This document shows positions 25,660-51,108 of a stretch of 64,000 bases of DNA, one piece after another. The notes beneath the pieces were generated by a model. The model worked only from the letters and a program-made list of their open reading frames with translations. It made no database searches and was not told the DNA's origin. The DNA is from Macrostomum hystrix (Eukaryota > Animalia > Platyhelminthes), in assembly GCA_950097015.1 (NCBI GenBank), contig CATNEN010000030.1, positions 3,472,001-3,536,000 of the forward strand. The letters are read 5' to 3'. The stretch's first letter is position 1. Each line of letters begins with the position of its first letter. The position numbers were made by a program, and so were the translations under genes.

Positions 25660-27160
25660 AAGTGAGCAGAGGAAGTGAGGGGAGAAGAGGAAGTGAGGGG
25701 AGAAGAGGAAGTGAGGGGGGAAGAGGAAGGGAGGGGAGAAGAGGAAGTGAGGGGGAGAAGAGAAATTCACGAGGGTGGGGTGGAGAAGAGGAAGTGAGGT
25801 GGAGAAGAGGGAGTGAAGTGGAGAAGAGGAAGTGAGGTGGAGAAGAGGAAATGAGGTGGAGAAGAGGACGTGAGGTGGAGAAGAGGAAGTGAAGTGAAGT
25901 GGAGAAGAGAAAGTGAGGTGGAGAAGAGGAAGTGAGGGGGAGAAGAGGAAGTGAGGTGGAGAAGAGGAAAAGAGCGGGGCAAGAGAAATTCAGGAGGGTG
26001 AGGGGGAGAAGAGGAAATGAGGTGGAGAGGAGGAAGTGAGGTGGAGAAGAGGAAGTGAGGTGGAGAAGAGGAAGTGAGGTGGAGAAGAGGAAGTGAGGTA
26101 GGTAGAGAAGAGGAAGTGAGGTGGAGAAGAGGAAAAGAGCGGGACAAGAGAAATTCAGGAGGGTGAGGGGGAGAAGAGGAAATGAGGTGGAGAAGAGGAA
26201 GTGATGGGAGAAGAGGAAGTGAGGTGGAGAAGAGGAAGTGAGGTGGAGAACAGGAAGTGAGGGGGTGAGGTGGAGAAGAGGAAGTGAGGGGGTAAGGTGG
26301 AGAAGAGGAAGTGAGGGGGTAAGGTGGAGAAGAGGAAGTGAGGGGGTGAGGTGTAGAAGAGGAAGTGAGGGGGTGAGGTGTAGAAGAGGAAGTGAGGGGG
26401 TAAGGTGGAGAAGAGGAAGTGAGGGGGTGAAGTGGAGAAGAGGAAGTGAGGGGGTAAGGTGGAGAAGAGGAAGTGAGGGGGTGAAGTGGAGAAGAGGAAG
26501 TGAGGGGGTGAGGTGTAGAAGAGGAAGTGAGGGGGTGAGGTGGAGAAGAGGAAGTGAGGGGGTAAGGTGGAGAAGAGGAAGTGAGGGGGTGAAGTGGAGA
26601 AGAGGAAGTGAGGGGGTGAGGTGTAGAAGAGGAAGTGAGGGGGTGAGGTGGAGAAGAGGAAGTGAGGGGGTAAGGTGGAGAAGAGGAAGTGAGGGGGTAA
26701 GGTGGAGAAGAGGAAGTGAGGGGGTGAAGTGGAGAAGAGGAAGTGAGGGGGTGAGGTGTAGAAGAGGAAGTGAGGGGGTGAGGTGGAGAAGAGGAAGTGA
26801 GGGGGTAAGGTGGAGAAGAGGAAGTGAGGGGTGAAGTGGAGAAGAGGAAGTGAGGGGGTGAGGTGTAGAAGAGGAAGTGAGGGGGTAAGGTGGAGAAGAG
26901 GAAGTGAGGGGGTGAAGTGGAGAAGAGGAAGTGAGGGGGTGAGGTGTAGAAGAGGAAGTGAGGGGGTGAGGTGTAGAAGAGGAAGTGAGGGGGTAAGGTG
27001 GAGAAGAGGAAGTGAGGGGGTGAGGTGTAGAAGAGGAAGTGAGGGGGTGAGGTGTAGAAGAGGAAGTGAGGGGGTGAGGTGTAGAAGAGGAAGTGAGGGG
27101 GTAAGGTGGAGAAGAGGAAGTGAGGGGGTGAGGTGTAGAAGAGGAAGTGAGGGGGTAGGG
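25660..27160. repeat. Purine-rich minisatellite, 19-bp unit (GAGGTGGAGAAGAGGAAGT) shifting to a 27-bp unit
   Basis: Direct reading. Source of the LTSSSPP / RWRRGSEGV artefact ORFs. Confidence 0.97.
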
Positions 27161-30306: not shown

Positions 30307-33300
30307 ATGAACATTGACGTGATCGGCCGGGTGCGGCCTTCGATTCGCAACGAGGGCCCGTGCACTCTAGCCATCGGCTCCGACAACCGAGTATCATCCA
30401 GGCCCGGCGGCCAGTCGTTTGTGTTCCAGCACCTGTACCAGCAGGGCGCCAGCAATCTTGACGTTTATAGTCGCCACGTGGAGCCGATGGTGGACATTTT
30501 CCTGGCTGGCTACAATGTCTGCTTCATGTGCTTCGGCGAGAGCGGCGCTGGCAAGAGCTTCACAATGGCCGGGGACTCGTCTATGAAAAATGGCCTTGTG
30601 CCGCTAGTGCTGGCTTCCCTGTTTGCCAAGCTGGATCCGGGTGAGCCCTGCGGCTGAGTCAGCCAGGCCAATGCTCATTGTCAGGGAGTGATTCCCCGAG
30701 AGTGACTCTCGCATAACGATTCTTAGAGATTCTTAGAGATTAGTGATTCTCGGAGAGTGATTCTCGGAGAGTGAGTGATTCTCGGAGAGTGATTCTCGGA
30801 GAGTGATTCTCGGAGAGTGAGTGATTCTCGGAGAGTGAGTGATTCTCGGAGAGTGAGTGATTCTCGGAGAGTGAGTGATTCTCGGAGAGTGAGTGATTCT
30901 CGAAGAGTGATTCTCGGAGAGTGAGTGATTCTCGGAGAGTGATTCTCGAAAAACGATTCTTAGAAAATTATTTTCGGAGAAGTGAGCGATTCTCAGAAGT
31001 GTGTCTAGAAGAGTTCTCATTAAAACGTTTCTTGAGTTCCCGCGATTATTTTTGAGATAAGGAATTCTAACTTAGTGATCATAAGCGCATTCAGACTTTA
31101 TTATTTTCTGCTTTTAAATCATTGCTTAATTTGTCGTGTGATTAATTTCATTTGTTATGAAGTAGATATCTCGACAACTGGCTTTGACCAATTAGCGAAG
31201 TCTAATTAACAAACATTTTGCGCTAACTCATATTGCCAATTACTTGTAGAAGTGATTAATGTAGGATTTTTCCAAGATCTAGTTAGTATTTTGCGCACGT
31301 GAGTTTTAACTAAGGCATGCCTTTGCACATTTCAGCCGATATCCTACCCGGTCGTAGTAAGTTTGACGAATAGCTTTTTGGCGCTACAATAAGCTCATTG
31401 GTTGCGGGAAAAATCCTTTCGAATTTTTAATTTAATTGTCTCCAAAGAGTCCCATGTTTGTCCCAGCTGGGTTGGGAACGCTGAATTTAAATCGTAAACC
31501 AATAGCCACTGATCTATTTGCTGATTGCTGCCACCTGCGAATTTTATTATGCATCTACATAAACTCGGACTCTTACCCACTGCCTCTCCTCTCTTCCTCT
31601 CCCCACTGCCTCTCCTCTCTTCCTCTCCCCACTGCCTCTCCTCTCTTCCTCTCCCCACTGCCTCTCCTCTCTTCCTCTCCCCACTGCCTCTCCTCTCTTC
31701 CTCTCCCCACTGCCTCTCCTCTCTTCCTCTCCCCACTGCCTCTCCTCTCTTCCTCTCCCCACTGCCTCTCCTCTCTTCCTCTCCCCACCGCCTCTCCTCT
31801 CTTCCTCTCCCCACTGCCTCTCCTCTCCTCCACTCCGCACTGCCTCTCCTCTCTTCCTCTCCCCACTGCCTCTCCTCTCTTCCTCTCCCCACTGCCTCTC
31901 CTCTCTTCCTCTCCCCACTGCCTCTCCTCTCTTCCTCTCCCCACTGCCTCTCCTCTCTTCCTCTCCCCACTGCCTCTCCTCTCTTCCTCTCCCCACTGCC
32001 TCTCCTCTCTTCCTCTCCCCACTGCCTCTCCTCTCTTCCTCTCCCCACTGCCTGTCCTCTCTTCCTCTCCCCACTGCCTCTCCTCTCTTCCTCTCCCCAC
32101 TGCCTGTCCTCTCTTCCTCTCCCCACTGCCTCTCCTCTCTTCCTCTCCCCACTGCCTCTCCTCTCTTCCTCTCCCCACTGCCTGTCCTCTCTTCCTCTCC
32201 CCACTGCCTGTCCTCTCTTCCTCTCCCCACTGCCTCTCCTCTCTTCCTCTCCCCACTGCCTCTCCTCTCTTCTTCTCCCCACTGCCTCTCCTCTCTTCCT
32301 CTCCCCACTGCCTCTCCTCTCTTCCTCTCCCCACTGCCTCTCCTCTCTTCTTCTCCCCACTGCCTCTCCTCTCTTCCTCTCCCTACTGCCTCTCCTCTCT
32401 TCCTCTCCCCACTGCCTCTCCTCTCTTCCTCTCCCCACTGCCTGTCCTCTCTTCTTCTCCCCACTGCCTGTCCTCTCTTCCTCTCCCCACTGCCTGTCCT
32501 CTCTTCCTCTCCCCACTGCCTGTCCTCTCTTCCTCTCCCCACTGCCTCTCCTCTCTTCTTCTCCCCACTGCCTCTCCTCTCTTCCTCTCCCTACTGCCTC
32601 TCCTCTCTTCCTCTCCCCACTGCCTCTCCTCTCTTCCTCTCCCCACTGCCTGTCCTCTCTTCTTCTCCCCACTGCCTGTCCTCTCTTCCTCTCCCCACTG
32701 CCTGTCCTCTCTTCCTCTCCCCACTGCCTCTCCTCTCTTCCTCTCCCCACTGCCTCTCCTCTCTTCTTCTCCCCACTGCCTCTCCTCTCTTCCTCTCCCC
32801 ACTGCCTCTCCTCTCTTCCTCTCCCCACTGCCTCTCCTCTCTTCTTCTCCCCACTGCCTCTCCTCTCTTCCTCTCCCTACTGCCTCTCCTCTCTTCCTCT
32901 CCCCACTGCCTCTCCTCTCTTCCTCTCCCCACTGCCTGTCCTCTCTTCTTCTCCCCACTGCCTGTCCTCTCTTCCTCTCCCCACTGCCTGTCCTCTCTTC
33001 CTCTCCCCACTGCCTCTCCTCTCTTCCTCTCCCCACTGCCTCTCCTCTCTTCCACTCCCCACTGCCTCTCCTCTCTTCCTCTCCCCACTGCCTCTCCTCT
33101 CTTCCTCTCCCCACTGCCTCTCCTCTCCTTCACCACTGCCTCTCCTCTCTTCCTCTCCCCACTGCCTCTCCTCTCCTTCACCACTGCCTCTCCTCTCTTC
33201 CTCTCCCCACTGCCTCTCCTCTCTTCCACTCCCCACTGCCTCTCCTCTCCTTCACCACTGCCTTACCTCTCTTCCTCGTCAAGAGCAATCCTCTTTCCTG

Positions 33301-38887: not shown

Positions 38888-39261
38888 CAGTGGCATGTGA
38901 AGCAGTGACACATGCTTTCGAATTTATATTTTAATGCAGACTTCCAATTAATAGTTCTTTTCTTCCCGTAAGACGCTTATCTACATATGAATTGTTTATA
39001 AAATGTAGCTTTACTTCTTTCAATTGTCGAATTTTTTACTTGTAGCTTCCTAACTCTGTATATTTAATGTTTAATTAAAATTGAATAAGTCCAAATGAAT
39101 ATTTGATGCGTGACATCAGGTTCAGAGATGTGATGAGATGCTTCACAATTTTTTATGTAGCTCTTGGTAAAGTCGCAGAAAATACATACCTTCTACATAC
39201 ATTTTTATTTTTCTAGCTATTTGAGTTTCCAAAAAGTAATTACACAGCTGTTCATTCTTAC

Positions 39262-40580
39262 TCCCCATTATCCTCTATTCTCCCCATTATCCTCTATTCT
39301 CCCTATTATCCTCTATTCTCCCTATTATCCTCTATTCTCCCCATTATCCTCTATTCTCTACATTGTTATCTATTCTCCCAATTGTCCTCTATTCTCCCCA
39401 TTATCCTCTATTCTCCCCATTATCCTCTATTCTCCCTATTATCCTCTATTCTCCCCATTATCCTCTATTCTCCCCATTATCCTCTATTCTCTACATTATT
39501 ATCTATTCTCCCAATTATCCTCTATTCTCCCCATTATCCTCTATTCTCCCTATTATCCTCTATTCTCCCCATTATCCTCTATTCTCTACATTGTTATCTA
39601 TTCTCCCAATTGTCCTCTATTCTCCCCATTATCCTCTATTCTCCCTATTATCCTCTATTCTCCCAATTATCCTCTATTCTCCCCATTATCCTCTATTCTC
39701 CCCATTATCCTCTATTCTCCCTATTATCCTCTATTCTCCCCATTATCCTCTATTCTCCCCAATGTCCTCTATTCTCTACATTATTATCTATTCTCCCAAT
39801 TATCCTCTATTCTCCCCATTATCCTCTATTCTCCCTATTATCCTCTATTCTCCCCATTATCCTCTATTCTCTACATTGTCATCCATTCTCCCAATTATCC
39901 TCTATTCTCCCCATTATCCTCTATTCTCTACATTGTCATCTATTCTCCCAATTATCCTCTATTCTCCCCATTATCCTCTATTCTCCATATTATCCTCTAT
40001 TCTCCCCATTATCCTCTATTCTCCCCATTATCCTCTATTCTCTACATTGTTATCTATTCTCCCAATTATCCTCTATTCTCCCCATAATCCTCTATTCTCC
40101 CTATTATCCTCTATTCTCCCCATTATCCTCTATTCTCCCTATTATCCTCTATTCTCCCCATTATCCTCTATTGTCCCTATTATCCTCTATTCTCCCCATT
40201 ATCCACTATTCTCCCCATTATCCTCTATTCTCCCTATTATCCTCTATTCTCCCCATTATCCTCTATTCTCCCAATTATCCTCTAATCTCTACATTGTCAT
40301 CTATTCTCCCAATTATCCTCTATTCTCCCCATTATCCTCTATTCTCCCAATTATCCTCTAATCTCTACATTGTCATCTATTCTCCCAATTATCCTCTATT
40401 CTCCCCATTATCCTCTATTCTCCCTATTATCCTCTATTCTCGCCATTATCCTCTATTCTCTCCATTACCCTCTATTCTCCCCATTATCCTCTATTCTCCT
40501 CATTATCCTCTATTTTCCCTATTATGTTCTATTCTCCCTATTATCCTCTATTCTCCCCATTGTCATCTATTATCCTCATT
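39262..40580. repeat. 19-bp minisatellite (ATTATCCTCTATTCTCCCC) between two convergent genes
   Basis: Direct reading. Source of the SILPIILYSP artefact ORFs. Confidence 0.97.
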
Positions 40581-40686
40581 CACATCTATCTTCCCCATTC
40601 TTATTTTCTAGCAATACCATTTCTAAGAATTTAAGGAATTTTTACTGGAGCGAAATCACATCTGCAATGAGTAAACTTCCCACCCA

Positions 40687-43600
40687 TCAAGAACCCACAC
40701 GAAACAGCAGCAGCCAGTAGGCCGCATTAACTGCCACAAACGACACCGGGAACAGGCACCTGGCGGCCCGATCGATCTTGGACTCGGAGTTCGGCTGTCC
40801 GGCATTGGCCAGAGGTGGCCAGTTGCTGTCAGATCTTATCGGGGCATATCTGCGATCGCCGCGAAGGCAGTCAGTGAACATGCGCAGGCATGACTGGTTG
40901 CTATGGGCAACGCGGCTGGTTTGAAGCTTGGCGCCGTTGACAACAGCAGCGGAGTCTAGCGGTGCCTCACGGCGGGGAATCTCCACGTTGCCAGCCTTGG
41001 TGAAGTAGTTGACTCCAGCGTACTCCAGCAGGGCTGAGAACACAAAGAAGAAGCAGATGAGCAGGAAGATGTCCATGGCGGTGGCGTAGGGAACTTTTGG
41101 CAGACCCATTCGACCTGTCAGGCTGATGGTCACGCTAGTCAGCAGGGCTGTGATGCCTGCAATTGTTATTTATCATTCCTGGGTCCAGCAAAGTACATCA
41201 TCGGACAAGCTCTGGATGGGCTTGTTCTAATGTCATTGTTTTATCATTTTCATAGCCCGAAATCAATGAGACTCTCACCTAGAGTGACCCTAGCTGGTGT
41301 GGCCTCTCTATTAATCCAGAAGCTGACCCAGGACATGGCCACGGTCATGTAGGACGGCAGGTAAATCTGCAGCACGTAGAACCCTATCATGCGCTCCAGT
41401 GGAATGGTCATGCTCAGCATTTTGCGCTGTTCTAAAATTATCAACGGATCTCTAAAATATTACTCATATTGGGACTTTCTGTTTACGAAGAGTCTGCAGT
41501 AATCATGTGTCACACTCACCTGCGCCAAGCCGGGCTTCAATGTGTGAGAACTCAACCCGATCCGGTCTAAATAGGAACTGAGCCATGGCGGTCACTTCAA
41601 AGCCAAGATTCTTGATACTGGCGTTCACAATTTTGATCGGGATGTTGTACAGGTGCGAGCTGAACTTCGCCTCCTCCCACCACAGGTAGACCAGGTTTTG
41701 TGAGTCGTAGGCGACTGTTTTCATTTGAAGGAAATGGAAGATAGCAATGAGAGCTGTTATTTCGAGAAATCTTAGCTGATCATAAGAAAATAACTGCCCT
41801 TTTGTAATGCGTTAGGAGGGTTCTGAGATATTTTAAGTGGTTGTGGATCATTCTATGAATCGTTGAATATCTCGACGATGCGGACATCAGACGGCTTTGA
41901 AAGTTGGTTCATCGTGAAAGGAGGAAATTTTGAATTAGATTGCTGACTTCCACGAAAATCGGTCATTCGGTTTGGAAGCATTAAGTAGGCAGTGGGTGTT
42001 TCAAATACCGCCGTGTTCTTGCAGGAAAATAGCGTAAAATTACTCGCGAAATTAAGCTGCGCATACACGAGTTACTGCTGACGAATCTAAACCGGTAGCT
42101 TCCATAAAAACTCACAGCTGCCAATCATTAGCAGGCAGGTCTGACTGTCAACAGGAAACCTGCGAAAGTCCATGTGGCACAGCGCTTTCACCGTGAGTCT
42201 GAAATGGAAAGCAAGCTAATTATCGAAAGCTTGCTAGCTAAACAATTCTAAGAAGTAGGAAATTAGTGTCACCACATTGAGAAGAACACAGTGATTCTAA
42301 GAAATAGGAAATTAGTGTCACCACATTGAGTAGAACACAGTGATTCTAAGAAATAGGAAATTAGTGTCACCGCATTGGGAAGAACACAGTGATTCTAAGA
42401 AATAGGAAATTAGTGTCACCACATTGAGTAGAACACAGTGATTCTAAGAAATAGGAAATTAGTGTCACCGCATTGAGAAGAACACAGTGATTCTAAGAAA
42501 TAGGAAATTAGTGTCACCGCATTGAGAAGAACACAGTGATTCTAAGAAATAAGAAATTAGTCTCACCGCATTGAGAACAACACAGTGATTCTAAGAAATA
42601 GGAAATTAGTGTCACCACATTGAGTAGAACACAGTGATTCTAAGAAATAGGAAATTAGTGTCACCGCATTGAGAAGAACACAGTGATTCTAAGAAATATA
42701 GACGGTCATGTAGGACGGCAGGTAAATCTGCCGTTGGTGTCACCGCAATTGAGAAGAACACAGTGATTCTAAATAGGAAATTGGTGTCACCGCATTGAGA
42801 AGAACACAGTGATTCTAAGAAATAGGAAATTAGTGTCACCGCATTGAGAAGAACACAGTGATTCTAAGAAATAGGAAATTAGTGTCACCGCATTGAGAAG
42901 AACACAGTGATTCTAAGAAATAGGAAATTAGTGTCACCGCATTGAGAAGAACACAGTGCCATCAGACTGGATCCTCAGCAGCTTGTTTGGAGTCGTAATC
43001 TCGTGCAACCGGGAGCCCTTGCCGTTGAAGAAGTAGGTGTCCGGTCGCCAGATGCGGCGCAATATGCTGACGCTGACTTTGATCTCATTCTGGCTAGCGT
43101 AGTTTGCGTCAAACTGCAATCGCTTGTCAATCCAGCATTGACGAAAATAGATCTCCATGGCATACATCTGGATAGGAATTCCATTTATAGTGCGTAATAT
43201 TCTTCCTTACTACTCACACTGAGTGTTTCTGCTACTAGTGCATGCATTTTTAATTTCTTCTAGAAATGAAAAATTTTCTAGAAAAATCTAGGAATTTTCC
43301 ATACTTCATACGCTGTAAGTGTTTCAGTTGTTAGTTCTAGGAACTTTCCATACCTCATACTCTGTAAGTGTTTCTGTTGTTAATTCTAGGAATTTTCCAT
43401 ACTACATTCGCTGTAAGTGTTTCAGTTGTTAGTTCTAGGAATTTTCCATACTACATTCGCTGTAAGTGATTCTGTTGTTAGTTCTAGGAATTTTCCATAC
43501 TACATTCGCTGTAAGTGTTTCTGTTGTTAGTTCTAGGAATTTTCCATACTACATTCGCTGTAAGTGTTTCTGTTGTTAGTTCTAGGAATTTTCCATACTA

Positions 43601-45748
43601 CATTTGCTGTAAGTGTTTCAGTTGTTAGTTCTAGGAATTTTCCATACTACATTCGCTGTAAGTGTTTCTGTTGTTAGTTCTAGGAATTTTCCATACTACA
43701 TTCGCTGTAAGTGTTTCTGTTGTTAGTTCTAGGAATTTTCCATACTACATTTGCTGTAAGTGTTTCAGTTGTTAGTTCTAGGAATTTTCCATACTACATT
43801 CGCTGTAAGTGTTTCTGTTGTTAGTTCTAGGAATTTTCCATACTACATTCGCTGTAAGTGTTTCTGTTGTTAGTTCTAGGAATTTTCCATACTACATTTG
43901 CTGTAAGTGTTTCAGTTGTTAGTTCTAGGAATTTTCCATACTACATTCGCTGTAAGTGTTTCTGTTGTTAGTTCTAGGAATTTTCCATACTACATTTGCT
44001 GTAAGTGTTTCAGTTGTTAGTTCTAGGAATTTTCCATACTACATTCGCTGTAAGTGTTTCAGTTGTTAGTTCTAGGAATTTTCCATACTACATTCGCTGT
44101 AAGTGTTTCTGTTGTTAGTTCTAGGAATTTTCCATACTACATTCGCTGTAAGTGTTTCTGCAATAATAATGACATGTACAAATATATAAAGTGTTTTTAT
44201 AACTACGTATGTTACCACTACCTGCACTTTACCCCACACGCGTGCGCTAGAATATTAAAATGCTAATTGGTATTTTGCTGTGAGTAAAATTTATGACAAA
44301 GAATCGTGTCAACAAGCATTCGACTATCGCAAAAAGCACTCACCATTTGCTCTTCATCAATAGGACCAAGATTTTTTATGAGCATGTTGACCGACACAGC
44401 CACCGGATCGTTATCTGCCAAGTATTTTTCTTACTTAGATGATCACAAGCGTTACTATTACGCGAGTTTGTTTATTTTTGTTGTTATAATTGTACAAAAC
44501 AGCTTACATTCGTAAGGGCGAGAATTCAAGTGTAACATGAATACTAAAAAATCATGCTTCCGGTTCCCAACTTTCCTTCCTGAGTTTTCACACACCTGTG
44601 ATTGGAATATACAAGTATTAATAAGGAGTAAGGAGTCTTACTCCTTAGATTTCTAACCTGATTTATTGAGAATAATCTTTGATGTCAAACACTTTTTCAG
44701 TTTTTTCTGGATTTTTTTTGATGGCGTGACTTAACGGTTTAAATTTTCTATACTGTGTGATTTGTTCTGTGAAAGACCATACATGAAATATTCTTCTGTG
44801 GTCAGTCAGAACATCAAGAGATTGTTTTTTTGTTACTTCATACTAATTGAAGATAATTAAGGTTCAAAACCTGTGCTAATTTATCTCATTTCACTCGAGG
44901 ACGTTAGTAACTAGTTGTATCTTACAATTTAAATAGGCTACAATTAAATTTTAATGACTAAAAACAGAACTTTAATTGAAGAAATCATATATTGATGCAA
45001 ATAAAAGCAAAACTCGGGTTAATTCGTTCGCCTCTCGCACAAAGGTCCCTGAGCTCGATTCCGCGGCGAGGCCACATTTATTTGGGGAGCCATGGCTTGG
45101 GGGTTTGTCGTGTAATTTACGCCCTTGAGGGCCAAACTCCAAGGTACAGTGAAAGCGTACACTGCCTGACGAGGAATGAGAAAGTCAGGGCAGATGTACA
45201 CACCAGTGTGATTGTGTCTGCGTACGGTACGAGCTATCTATGTTCGTGTGCTCGGGAGTCAGCGAAATGGGCAGAATTGCCTCCTCGCTGGCTGCGGGTT
45301 GATCGAATGTCACCAAATGATGTGATGTGCCATTGCCCATGACAATTCTGCAAACATTATCATTTTGATTGTTACTTTTGCTTCTCGTATAGAAAATATA
45401 CTTGCTAGATCCATTATTAAAGAATCCCAGTGAATGAGGATGATTTCAGTTTTTGGAGTTTTGAGTAAGTACGGCAATTTCACTAAAAACGGTTCTCCAA
45501 ATTTTCGATTTCTCACCGACAACCTCCCGCTCGCCAGTGGCATTGTTCCACCGCATGTCCAGGCCGGGCCGCAGGTTGCTGTCGTATCGGGCCGCGGCCA
45601 AAATCCTGTCCAGCACGCGGGACACTCGCACAAGTTGGGACGCTGGATCAGCCTCATCTAGAGCTGGGCTGGAGGCAGCCCGGCAGATGAGCATTTTGAG
45701 TAGGCTACAAAGATTTTGGCATGTTCCACGAGTCATAAGAGTCGGCAT
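40687..45748 (-). CDS. Cys-loop ligand-gated anion channel subunit, GABA-A alpha/GRD-like; 5' end unresolved
   Basis: Exons ~45748-45517, 44414-44344, 43167-42938, 42198-42116, 41714-41520, 41431-41279 and 41156-40687, with consistent phases. Motifs: [20 protein letters not shown], Cys-loop [16 protein letters not shown]1 [20 protein letters not shown]2 [25 protein letters not shown]4 [12 protein letters not shown]. The 83- and 153-nt exons match vertebrate GABA-A exon sizes. Confidence 0.9.
42246..42958. repeat. 49-bp tandem array derived from an exon/intron junction of the GABA-receptor gene (~14 units)
   Basis: Unit on the sense (minus) strand: AATCACTGTGTTCTTCTCAATGCG|GTGACACTAATTTCCTATTTCTTAG. 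The first unit overlaps the real exon end at 42938. Confidence 0.95.
43285..44160. repeat. Second 49-bp intronic minisatellite (CTAGGAATTTTCCATACTACATTCGCTGTAAGTGTTTCTGTTGTTAGTT), ~18 copies
   Basis: Direct reading; period 49 verified (43337 to 43386). Confidence 0.96.
45015..45365 (+). mobile_element. SINE family B, long variant
   Basis: Shares its head and internal modules with the copies at 38561-38769 and 62065-62400. Confidence 0.8.
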
Positions 45749-49245: not shown

Positions 49246-51108
49246 TCACGGTAGAATAAATTCCCAAACACAGTCAGCTTCGGAGTCGGCGACGAACAGT
49301 CGAATAAGACCGTCGACCTCGCCAGTTTCATAGATGGCGAGGCCAACTGGACGGCGCATGTCCGGCCGCGCTAACCGATAGACGAGGTCGCCATTAGCTG
49401 AAATCGCAGTCAAGCATCCGCCATCGGAATCGGCGACGTACACAACGCCGCGGCTGTCCACCGCGCAGGCCGAGGGAGCACCAAGGCTGTAGCTGATGTC
49501 CCCAGATTTGGCTACGCCCGCTCTTGCGCCCCTTCCACCTCCGCTTCCGCCTCCGCTTCCGCCTCCGTTTCCGCCTCCGCTTCCGCCTCCGCATCCACCT
49601 CCGATTCCGCCTCCGCTTCCGCCTCCGCTTCCACCTCCGATTCCGCCTCCGCTTCCGCCTCCGCTTCCACCTCCGCTTCCGCCTCCGCTTCCGCCTCCGC
49701 TTCCACCTCCGCTTCCGCCTCCGCTTCCGCCTCCGTTTCCGCCTCCGCTTCCGCCTCCGCATCCACCTCCGATTCCGCCTCCGCTTCCGCCTCCGCTTCC
49801 ACCTCCGATTCCGCCTCCGCTTCCGCCTCCGCTTCCACCTCCGCTTCCGCCTCCGCTTCCGCCTCCGCTTCCACCTCCGCTTCCGCTTCCGCCTCCGCCT
49901 CCGGTTCCGCCCCCGCTTCCACCTCCGTCTCCTTTCCTCGCTCGACTTCCGCCACCGCCGGCTGGAGGAAAGACAGCCACAACTTGCTGCGTAAATTCAC
50001 ACAGCTTAGCCAGGCAGGTTGGCGAAGAAGAGCAGGCGTACAGATGAGGCCGTTGCCTAGCAACGCAGAATGCCATCTCAGTGCCGTCCCAGCGCCGCCT
50101 GAAAAGATGGCTAACATTTGTCGGCTTCCAGTTGGCGCGCGTCGAGATCAAAAGTGTTGAAGCTTCAACTCGGCCCGCAGCTTCGCCGACGAGCTCTTCT
50201 TTAACCACTTCCGGCGTGGCCACGGCGAAGGCAAACAGCTCTCCGGGCTCGTCGCCAAAGCACAGGCCGAAGCACATGCAGACTTCGTATTCAACACTAA
50301 AATCGGTTCCGATAAGGCGTCTAAGGACATTGCCAGCGAGGTCAATGAGCAGCACACAAGACCCGGCGCCGCCGCCCCTCGCCTTGATAACCGAAACTGC
50401 CAGCTTGACTTCACCATCGTAGTCCGCAGCAGCCAAGCCAGCGATGAAGTCGCCGACCTCCAGGCCGGCTGGACGCAGCGCCACCGTCAGGTGAGTCGCC
50501 GGCTGAGATATGACCAGCGACAGGCGGCAGACGGAGCCACCTTCGGCGTGCGCCACTGCCAGGCACGGCGGCTGCACGGGAATCCAGCCTTCGTCATCGG
50601 CCAATGACGACACTAGACGGCTCACTGAGCTCTGCAGCCGCTCGTCAGAATCCTGCAGGACGCGAACCCGAAGTTTGTGAGTTCGGGCGCACACGGCCAC
50701 ATGGCAGGGCGAGGCAACGCCCGTCGGTGCGATCGCCTGAGCCCGCTGAGAGGCCGCGTCGACGTCCAGACGGCCAATCCGCGGCGGCGGCGGCTCCCGA
50801 TTCTCGCCGAAATGAAGTCGCGGCAGCAGAGTGCCCAGACGGTGCCGCAGGTTGCCTAGGTAACCAATGACATCGCCCGGAGGAAGGCCGGCTTCGTGTT
50901 GATCGTCAGCCGACCGCCGACTGCTATCAAGGGCCAGTTGGCGATCAGCGATGTCCCGCTGCAGTCGACTGCGATACTTCTCTAGCAGGCCGTGAAGCCG
51001 GTCGAACTCGGCGTCCAGCAAGGCCGACTGGCAGTCGAGAAGGTCGCGCTGGCGACGCAGCTTCTGCGCATTCAGCTGGTCCCGATTCAGGGTCGCCTGA
51101 GGCTGCAT
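49246..51108 (-). CDS. Coiled-coil + NHL/beta-propeller-like protein (TRIM-C-terminal-like) with a ~130-aa Gly/Ser insert, 620 aa
   Basis: One uninterrupted GC-rich ORF. N-terminal coiled coil; NHL-like repeats [22 protein letters not shown] and [10 protein letters not shown]...RLFVAD. The GGGS block is encoded by a 12-bp repeat. Confidence 0.7.
49530..49930. repeat. Exonic 12-bp repeat (CCGCCTCCGCTT) encoding (GGGS)n, including a 168-bp internal duplication
   Basis: Direct reading. The duplicated marker CTCCGTTTCC occurs at 49563 and 49731. Confidence 0.92.

Follow-up and report, generated by a model that had tools for sequence, protein, structure and literature searches.

Minisatellites in which the first monomer lies across an exon-intron boundary are known from a group of genes comprising human F7 (the 37-bp VNTR of intron 7), IFI6 (6-16), CBS (IVS13), LMNB2, and PDGF (Borensztajn et al., 2006; PMC1557585). 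In F7, LMNB2, and PDGF, only the first donor of the repeat is used. The pseudo-sites of F7 work if the first donor is mutated, and they lose to the 5'-to-3' first-site rule even when strengthened; in IFI6 and CBS, splicing also takes place at the two pseudo-donors closest to the authentic site (PMC1557585). Similar structures, termed "mirages", were found in amphioxus as minisatellite duplications of exon/intron boundaries in the Adh3 and globin genes (Ebner et al., 2010; PMC3087553, citing Canestro et al., 2002); they leave regular splicing undisturbed and have been proposed as raw material for intron gain. A related process is intron gain in which an exon segment containing AGGT is duplicated in tandem (Hellsten et al., 2011, PMC3265369; Ma et al., 2016, PMC4974935).

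We analyzed a 64,000-nucleotide window of the flatworm Macrostomum hystrix (contig CATNEN010000030.1), which harbors a 49-bp splice-junction minisatellite within a gene for a GABA-A-like receptor subunit. The kind of structure is already known, and what is unusual here is that a donor and a strong acceptor-like site occur together in one repeat unit. The array resembles the F7 type in the series of identical pseudo-donors that comes after the authentic one. In contrast to F7, the flatworm unit also contains a strong acceptor-like pyrimidine tract with an AG, and because each unit thus holds a donor and an acceptor-like site, 24-nt in-frame pseudo-exons are delimited; furthermore, the copied exon part amounts to 21 nt, compared with 4 nt in F7. 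Relative to the amphioxus mirages, the array belongs to another phylum and has a unit of 49 bp instead of up to ~160 bp. Its host, unlike those of the F7 group, is a flatworm with short introns. As in AGGT-type intron gain, tandem duplication has made extra donor/acceptor pairs from existing sequence. However, AGGT duplication takes place within an exon and produces a new intron, whereas the flatworm duplication straddles an old intron and merely lengthens it.

The array occupies positions 42958-42245 of the window on the minus strand, to which all features described below belong, and is composed of 14 head-to-tail units when read in register, with a total length of 714 bp. Tandem Repeats Finder reported a 49-bp period in two blocks, at 42245-42698 (9.3 copies, 95% matches, score 824) and at 42737-42958 (4.6 copies, 97% matches, score 407). 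Twelve of the 14 units are 49 bp long, the exceptions being unit 4 (46 bp) and unit 5 (80 bp). Unit 1 is itself the genuine junction of exon 3 and intron 3, with 21 nt from the end of the exon followed by 28 nt of intron, and units 2-14 are 13 extra copies, all of them intronic. The locus therefore has the hallmarks of a splice-junction minisatellite, namely a tandem unit in the range of 10-160 bp, a first monomer lying across a real boundary, and a donor repeated in the intron. A search of the whole 220-Mb assembly placed the array at this single locus.

The individual units record the history of the array. Units 1, 2, 3, 6, 9, and 10 are identical to each other. Units 7 (42588-42636), 11 (42392-42440), and 13 (42294-42342) form a second identical set with two substitutions in common, and the ATGTG variant that they carry is also present in unit 14 (42245-42293). 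Private changes are found in units 8 (42539-42587), 12, and 14. Unit 4 (42766-42811) has a shorter pyrimidine tract through the loss of CTT, and CCAAT in place of CTAAT. Unit 5 (42686-42765) has an extra T, which gives a 25-nt pseudo-exon and a frameshift, and an insertion in its pseudo-intron. This insertion of 30 nt (42702-42731) is an exact copy (30/30) of part of exon 6 that encodes TM1 (QIYLPSYMT), in the same orientation; its source at 41341-41370 lies ~1.3 kb downstream of unit 5. We infer that the insertion is the signature of a templated event in break or fork repair. The self-identity of the array is highest at a lag of 196 bp, which, together with the identity of the non-adjacent units 7, 11, and 13, suggests growth by multi-unit exchange rather than in a single burst. 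A DNA hairpin was considered as a driver of slippage and discarded, since the predicted fold of a pseudo-unit as DNA is weak (-3.7 kcal/mol, z -1.6) and the other strand gave nothing.

The host gene extends over 40687-45745 and is modeled with seven exons at 45745-45517, 44414-44344, 43167-42938, 42198-42116, 41714-41520, 41431-41279, and 41156-40687. The model is based on exon-wise matches and on exon lengths: with canonical GT-AG boundaries, the exons measure 229, 71, 230, 83, 195, 153, and 470 nt, and their sum of 1431 nt is divisible by three. Exon 3 (42938-43167, 230 nt) encodes part of the ligand-binding domain and ends in phase 2 with ...DGTVFFSMR. It matches Pfam Neur_chan_LBD (E 1.8e-16), its top matches among solved structures in the PDB are GABA-A alpha chains (E ~2e-17), and by tblastn it corresponds to residues 1-77 of P0002, the orthologue from Macrostomum lignano. 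Exon 4 (42116-42198, 83 nt, 27 protein letters) encodes the Cys-x13-Cys loop, and is likewise supported by Neur_chan_LBD and by tblastn. Exons 6 and 7 match Pfam Neur_chan_memb, and a PAR motif (...TPARVTLG) precedes TM2 in exon 6. The nearest proteins in a large library are three M. lignano entries, with 88%, 82%, and 79% identity over exon 3, and the next-nearest named relatives are nemertean and arthropod proteins called "GABA receptor alpha-like".

When P0002 was compared with the window by tblastn, collinear exon matches were obtained with 73-88% identity (88% for exon 3), and the junction of exons 3 and 4 was contiguous at residues 77/78 of P0002. All real splice sites are canonical, and the seven exons are intact and in frame. 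By these matches, the host gene is a Cys-loop ligand-gated anion channel gene for a GABA-A-alpha-like subunit. A search with P0002 returned only four UniRef entries, all from M. lignano, and neither contigs nor proteins of the flatworm's own species. A word search for transcripts and proteins with exon 3 alone gave one unrelated match (48%), and exact look-ups of P0002 and of the exon 3 open reading frame found no record.

On the sense strand, each regular unit is split into a 24-nt pseudo-exon and a 25-nt pseudo-intron. Together, units 2-14 contain 13 pseudo-donors, and 14 pseudo-acceptor AGs are present, one at the end of each unit including unit 1. If a 24-nt pseudo-exon were included in phase 2, the product would gain eight residues, ITVFFSMR. 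Eight of the 13 pseudo-exons are open and in frame, four (in units 7, 11, 13, and 14) end in a TG|A stop, and the one in unit 5 shifts the frame. A first-pass annotation of this DNA had reported an amplified exon/intron junction inside a GABA-receptor gene, with about 13 in-frame units split into 24 nt and 25 nt, an added peptide of eight residues per included unit, and four ATGTG units that would give a stop. The amplified junction, with unit 1 as the real one, the split in register, the peptide (for the 24-nt pseudo-exons), and the four stop-bearing units are all borne out by our analysis. Two points need correction: the pseudo-exon of unit 5 shifts the frame, so that only eight of the 13 are open, and the exon-derived part, given there as 20 nt, is 21 nt by comparison of the units.

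The changes accumulated in the pseudo-exons do not respect the peptide. All five distinct changes (F>Y, F>L, S>P, the stop-creating C>T, and the +1 frameshift) alter or break it, with F>L and S>P occurring in units 8 and 12, and ~6 changes are present in the equally long pseudo-introns. As judged from these substitutions, the pseudo-exons are free of any sign of coding constraint or selection. Judging by alignment to GABA-A structures, an ITVFFSMR insert would repeat half of the core beta-strand that immediately precedes the Cys-loop, which would probably be disruptive.

The splice signals within the array are strong enough to merit a separate comparison with those of the host gene. The authentic donor of intron 3 is GCG|GTGACA, and among the 13 repeated donors, eight are identical to it, four read TG|GTGACA, and one (unit 8) reads GTGAGA. 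GTGACA is the sole donor among the six of the gene that lacks a G at position +5, whereas the GTGAGA of unit 8, a donor form also found at other introns of the gene, has it. The pseudo-acceptors have 11 pyrimidines among the 12 positions before the AG, compared with 4-10 of 12 in the six real acceptors, and a CTAAT motif lies ~15 nt upstream; acceptor-like sites of comparable quality occur outside arrays at 0.28 per kb. A donor joined to the acceptor of the next unit would define an intron of 74 nt, which is a normal size here. If exon 3 were instead extended past its authentic donor, it would read CGG TGA, an immediate stop. Given the strong pseudo-acceptor tract, the authentic donor without +5 G, and the GTGAGA of unit 8, cryptic splicing is conceivable when sequence signals alone are considered. 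Against this stand the dimensions of the unit. Exons of 24 nt are poorly defined without special enhancers and are normally skipped, and an intron of 25 nt is, to our knowledge, below any workable metazoan size.

The history of intron 3 was assessed from related genes. Intron 3 (42199-42937, 739 nt) begins with the donor GTGACA and ends with the acceptor ...TTTCAG, and between unit 14 and the real acceptor (TTTCAG|A) it has a unique tail of 46 nt (42199-42244). With the 13 extra units removed, it would be 74 nt long. At the identical codon position and in the identical phase, two paralogues from this genome also carry an intron, which measures 85 nt in L004 and is long in L005; neither contains the array. 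Since these introns share position and phase and are without the array, intron 3 is old, or ancestral, and the array private to this gene copy. By the same comparison, intron 3 was formerly short, and the array is a recent private expansion of it. The orthologue P0002 and two paralogue families of M. lignano (P0003 and P0004) all read ...TVFFSMRLT(V/I)KA, with no ITVFFSMR insert. Intron gain by tandem duplication was rejected for this locus, as L004 and L005 have the intron at the same position and phase. The two wider proposals of the first-pass annotation, a snapshot of exon or intron birth and a tunable source of splice isoforms or NMD, find no support here, and the unconstrained pseudo-exons and the orthologue and paralogues without an insert speak against them.

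RNA folding predictions indicate a hairpin at each duplicated junction, in which the UUAG of the pseudo-acceptor is paired to the CUAA that follows it, with a 10-bp G-U-rich stem enclosing the pseudo-donor. In single-sequence predictions, made without covariation support, the sense RNA of a consensus pseudo-unit folds at -12.1 kcal/mol (z -3.7, with none of 200 shuffles as good) and that of unit 8 at -16.5 kcal/mol (z -5.0), the most stable hairpin of the array. The sense RNA of the authentic junction, predicted in the same way, reaches only -8.7 kcal/mol (z -1.0) and lacks the outer stem, and the antisense RNA of a pseudo-unit gives -6.9 kcal/mol (z -0.7). The corresponding donor hairpin in the two paralogues was no better than in shuffled sequences (z -0.9 and -0.5). 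The predicted folds suggest that the array copies are less accessible through the hairpin than the authentic donor.

The explanation that we consider probable is that the array is a splice-junction minisatellite of the "mirage" or F7 type, neutral in effect and removed whole by splicing. A 49-bp segment across the boundary, with 21 nt of exon 3 and 28 nt of the intron, would have been duplicated in tandem, and slippage or unequal exchange would then have raised the number to 14 copies and the length of the intron from 74 to 739 nt. Tandem duplication leaves the exon attached to the first copy, so that every additional copy falls within the intron and the coding sequence stays as it was. The first donor (42938|42937) would be joined to the last acceptor (42199|42198) to give the protein ...FFSMR|LTVKA.... 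Three factors may combine to silence the copies. The donor that stands beside a properly defined exon would be chosen first in the 5'-to-3' direction, as experiments have demonstrated for human F7. The 24-nt pseudo-exons would be too short for exon definition, and the 25-nt intron too short for splicing. Finally, the hairpin of each unit would bury the pseudo-donors, and the hairpin around the authentic donor would be weaker, with no advantage over shuffled sequences. On the evidence from the sequence, splicing most likely removes the array in one piece, without producing new protein variants, and we regard the array as neutral or slightly deleterious.

Removal of the whole array has to be weighed against the possibility that the array is used, the 24-nt micro-exons adding ITVFFSMR or a stop and so generating isoforms or NMD substrates at a level set by the number of repeats. 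The GT and AG kept in every unit, the 11/12 pyrimidine tract with CTAAT, and the 74-nt introns that neighboring units could form are all consistent with such use, as are the eight open and four TG|A-bearing pseudo-exons, an authentic donor that is the weakest of the gene, and the active proximal pseudo-donors of IFI6 and CBS (PMC1557585). However, the five pseudo-exon changes all alter the peptide, by a frameshift and stops among other ways, and the orthologue and paralogues have no insert at the junction. The insert would also double half of a core beta-strand before the Cys-loop, exons of this size are generally passed over, the pseudo-sites fall within the predicted hairpin, and the units of the array, which is young and private, are 95-100% identical. 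Comparable arrays are silent elsewhere (PMC1557585, PMC3087553), and taken with the preceding points this makes use of the array unlikely. A more elaborate version, which we regard as very unlikely, would make the array a structure-gated splicing device dependent on repeat length. The hairpin would normally mask the pseudo-sites, and its opening by temperature, helicases, or transcription speed would then lead to poison micro-exons (from the ATGTG units) or to CGG-TGA read-through and tune the level of this receptor subunit; Macrostomum arrays in general could serve as a pool for new exons and introns.

The array could also be mildly harmful, with part of the pre-mRNA diverted to transcripts with a premature stop in a gene copy that is decaying while buffered by two paralogues. 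The stop that directly follows an extended exon 3 (CGG TGA), the unit 8 donor that is stronger than the authentic one, and the two close paralogues in the genome would fit this scenario. Yet the seven exons are intact and in frame, with 73-88% identity to the M. lignano orthologue (88% in exon 3), and the real splice sites are all canonical. Decay might not be visible because the array is too young, and we judge this scenario improbable. Assemblies can mis-size tandem repeats, and the copy number or even the whole array might in principle have come from repeat mis-assembly. This is extremely unlikely for an array of only 714 bp whose variants are ordered and non-periodic and include one unit of only 46 bp and another of 80 bp that bears a unique insertion; in addition, 42 contigs for 220 Mb imply a long-read assembly, and the window is full of similar arrays. 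A neutral minisatellite that is spliced out with its intron is the preferred reading.

The locus represents a natural cis-competition experiment, in which 14 near-identical donors stand in a row with 14 acceptor-like sites and the host is a receptor gene that looks essential. RNA data from it could reveal how the spliceosome of a flatworm with short introns chooses among identical sites, whether the mammalian first-site rule holds outside vertebrates, and whether RNA structure contributes to the silencing. As a single locus, it adds little beyond F7, IFI6, CBS, and the amphioxus mirages, and its value lies mainly in being an entry for a genome-wide Macrostomum catalogue of intron-inflating junction minisatellites.

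The surroundings of the array are rich in such repeats. Minisatellites make up 24.7% of the window in 23 arrays, and three of these are in or beside the receptor gene; in M. lignano, simple and tandem repeats reportedly account for 15% of the genome (PMC5730564). In so minisatellite-rich a genome, an array that starts a few bases within an exon is not surprising. A second 49-bp minisatellite (43287-44160, 17.8 copies by Tandem Repeats Finder) is located in intron 2 of the same gene, and its unit continues in degenerate form to 43199 (score 30, compared with a shuffle maximum of 24). A common origin of the two 49-bp arrays was dismissed, as they have no similarity (score 13, compared with a shuffle mean of 13.9), and so was the idea that the intron 2 array derives from the acceptor side of the intron 2/exon 3 junction, since 28 of 500 shuffles match the acceptor as well. 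The third array, with a 19-bp unit, lies just beyond the stop codon of the gene. A neighboring open reading frame of 620 amino acids is rich in low-complexity Gly/Ser words.

The junction array, a 49-bp minisatellite whose first unit is the authentic exon 3/intron 3 junction of the receptor gene, carries in its 80-bp unit 5 (42686-42765) a 30-nt insertion (42702-42731) that exactly matches, in the same orientation, a stretch of the TM1 coding sequence in exon 6 (41341-41370). The copy lies 1.3 kb upstream of its source, and looks like a templated insertion, in which an exon 6 piece was placed into unit 5 during break or replication repair. Unit 8 (42539-42587) is alone among the junction-array units in having acquired GTGAGA, the usual donor form of the gene, in place of the authentic GTGACA. 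A second substitution in the same unit extends a predicted RNA hairpin covering the improved donor (-16.5 kcal/mol, z -5.0). The coupling of the donor gain with the longer predicted hairpin may be a coincidence, or masking by the hairpin may allow a stronger pseudo-donor to be tolerated.

The receptor gene has two close paralogues elsewhere in the M. hystrix genome, L004 (G000:C15:925458-925688) and L005 (G000:C33:3791785-3792015), with 84% and 82% identity over exon 3, respectively, and with the intron at the same position as in the receptor gene. Their counterparts in M. lignano are the proteins P0003 and P0004, and this GABA-A-alpha-like subfamily therefore comprises three or more members within the genus.

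Intron 2, which neighbors the intron of the junction array, contains a second minisatellite (43287-44160; 17.8 copies) that shares the 49-bp period; the units of the two arrays are not similar. A degenerate copy extends it to about 43199, ~30 nt short of the exon 3 acceptor. On the downstream side, about 90 bp separate the receptor stop codon (40689-40687, minus strand) from the end, at 40599, of a 19-bp minisatellite of about 70 copies (39261-40599), located in the presumed 3' UTR or flank of the gene.

Minisatellites make up 24.7% of the 64-kb window, in 23 separate arrays whose periods range from 12 to 62 bp. A 12/30-bp array (49532-49959) encodes the long Gly/Ser repeat of a 620-aa open frame on the minus strand (49246-51108), for which a word search, dominated by low-complexity words, returned no relatives. 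Several arrays in the window, e.g., 25668-27156 and 31576-33277, are strongly strand-asymmetric in composition.
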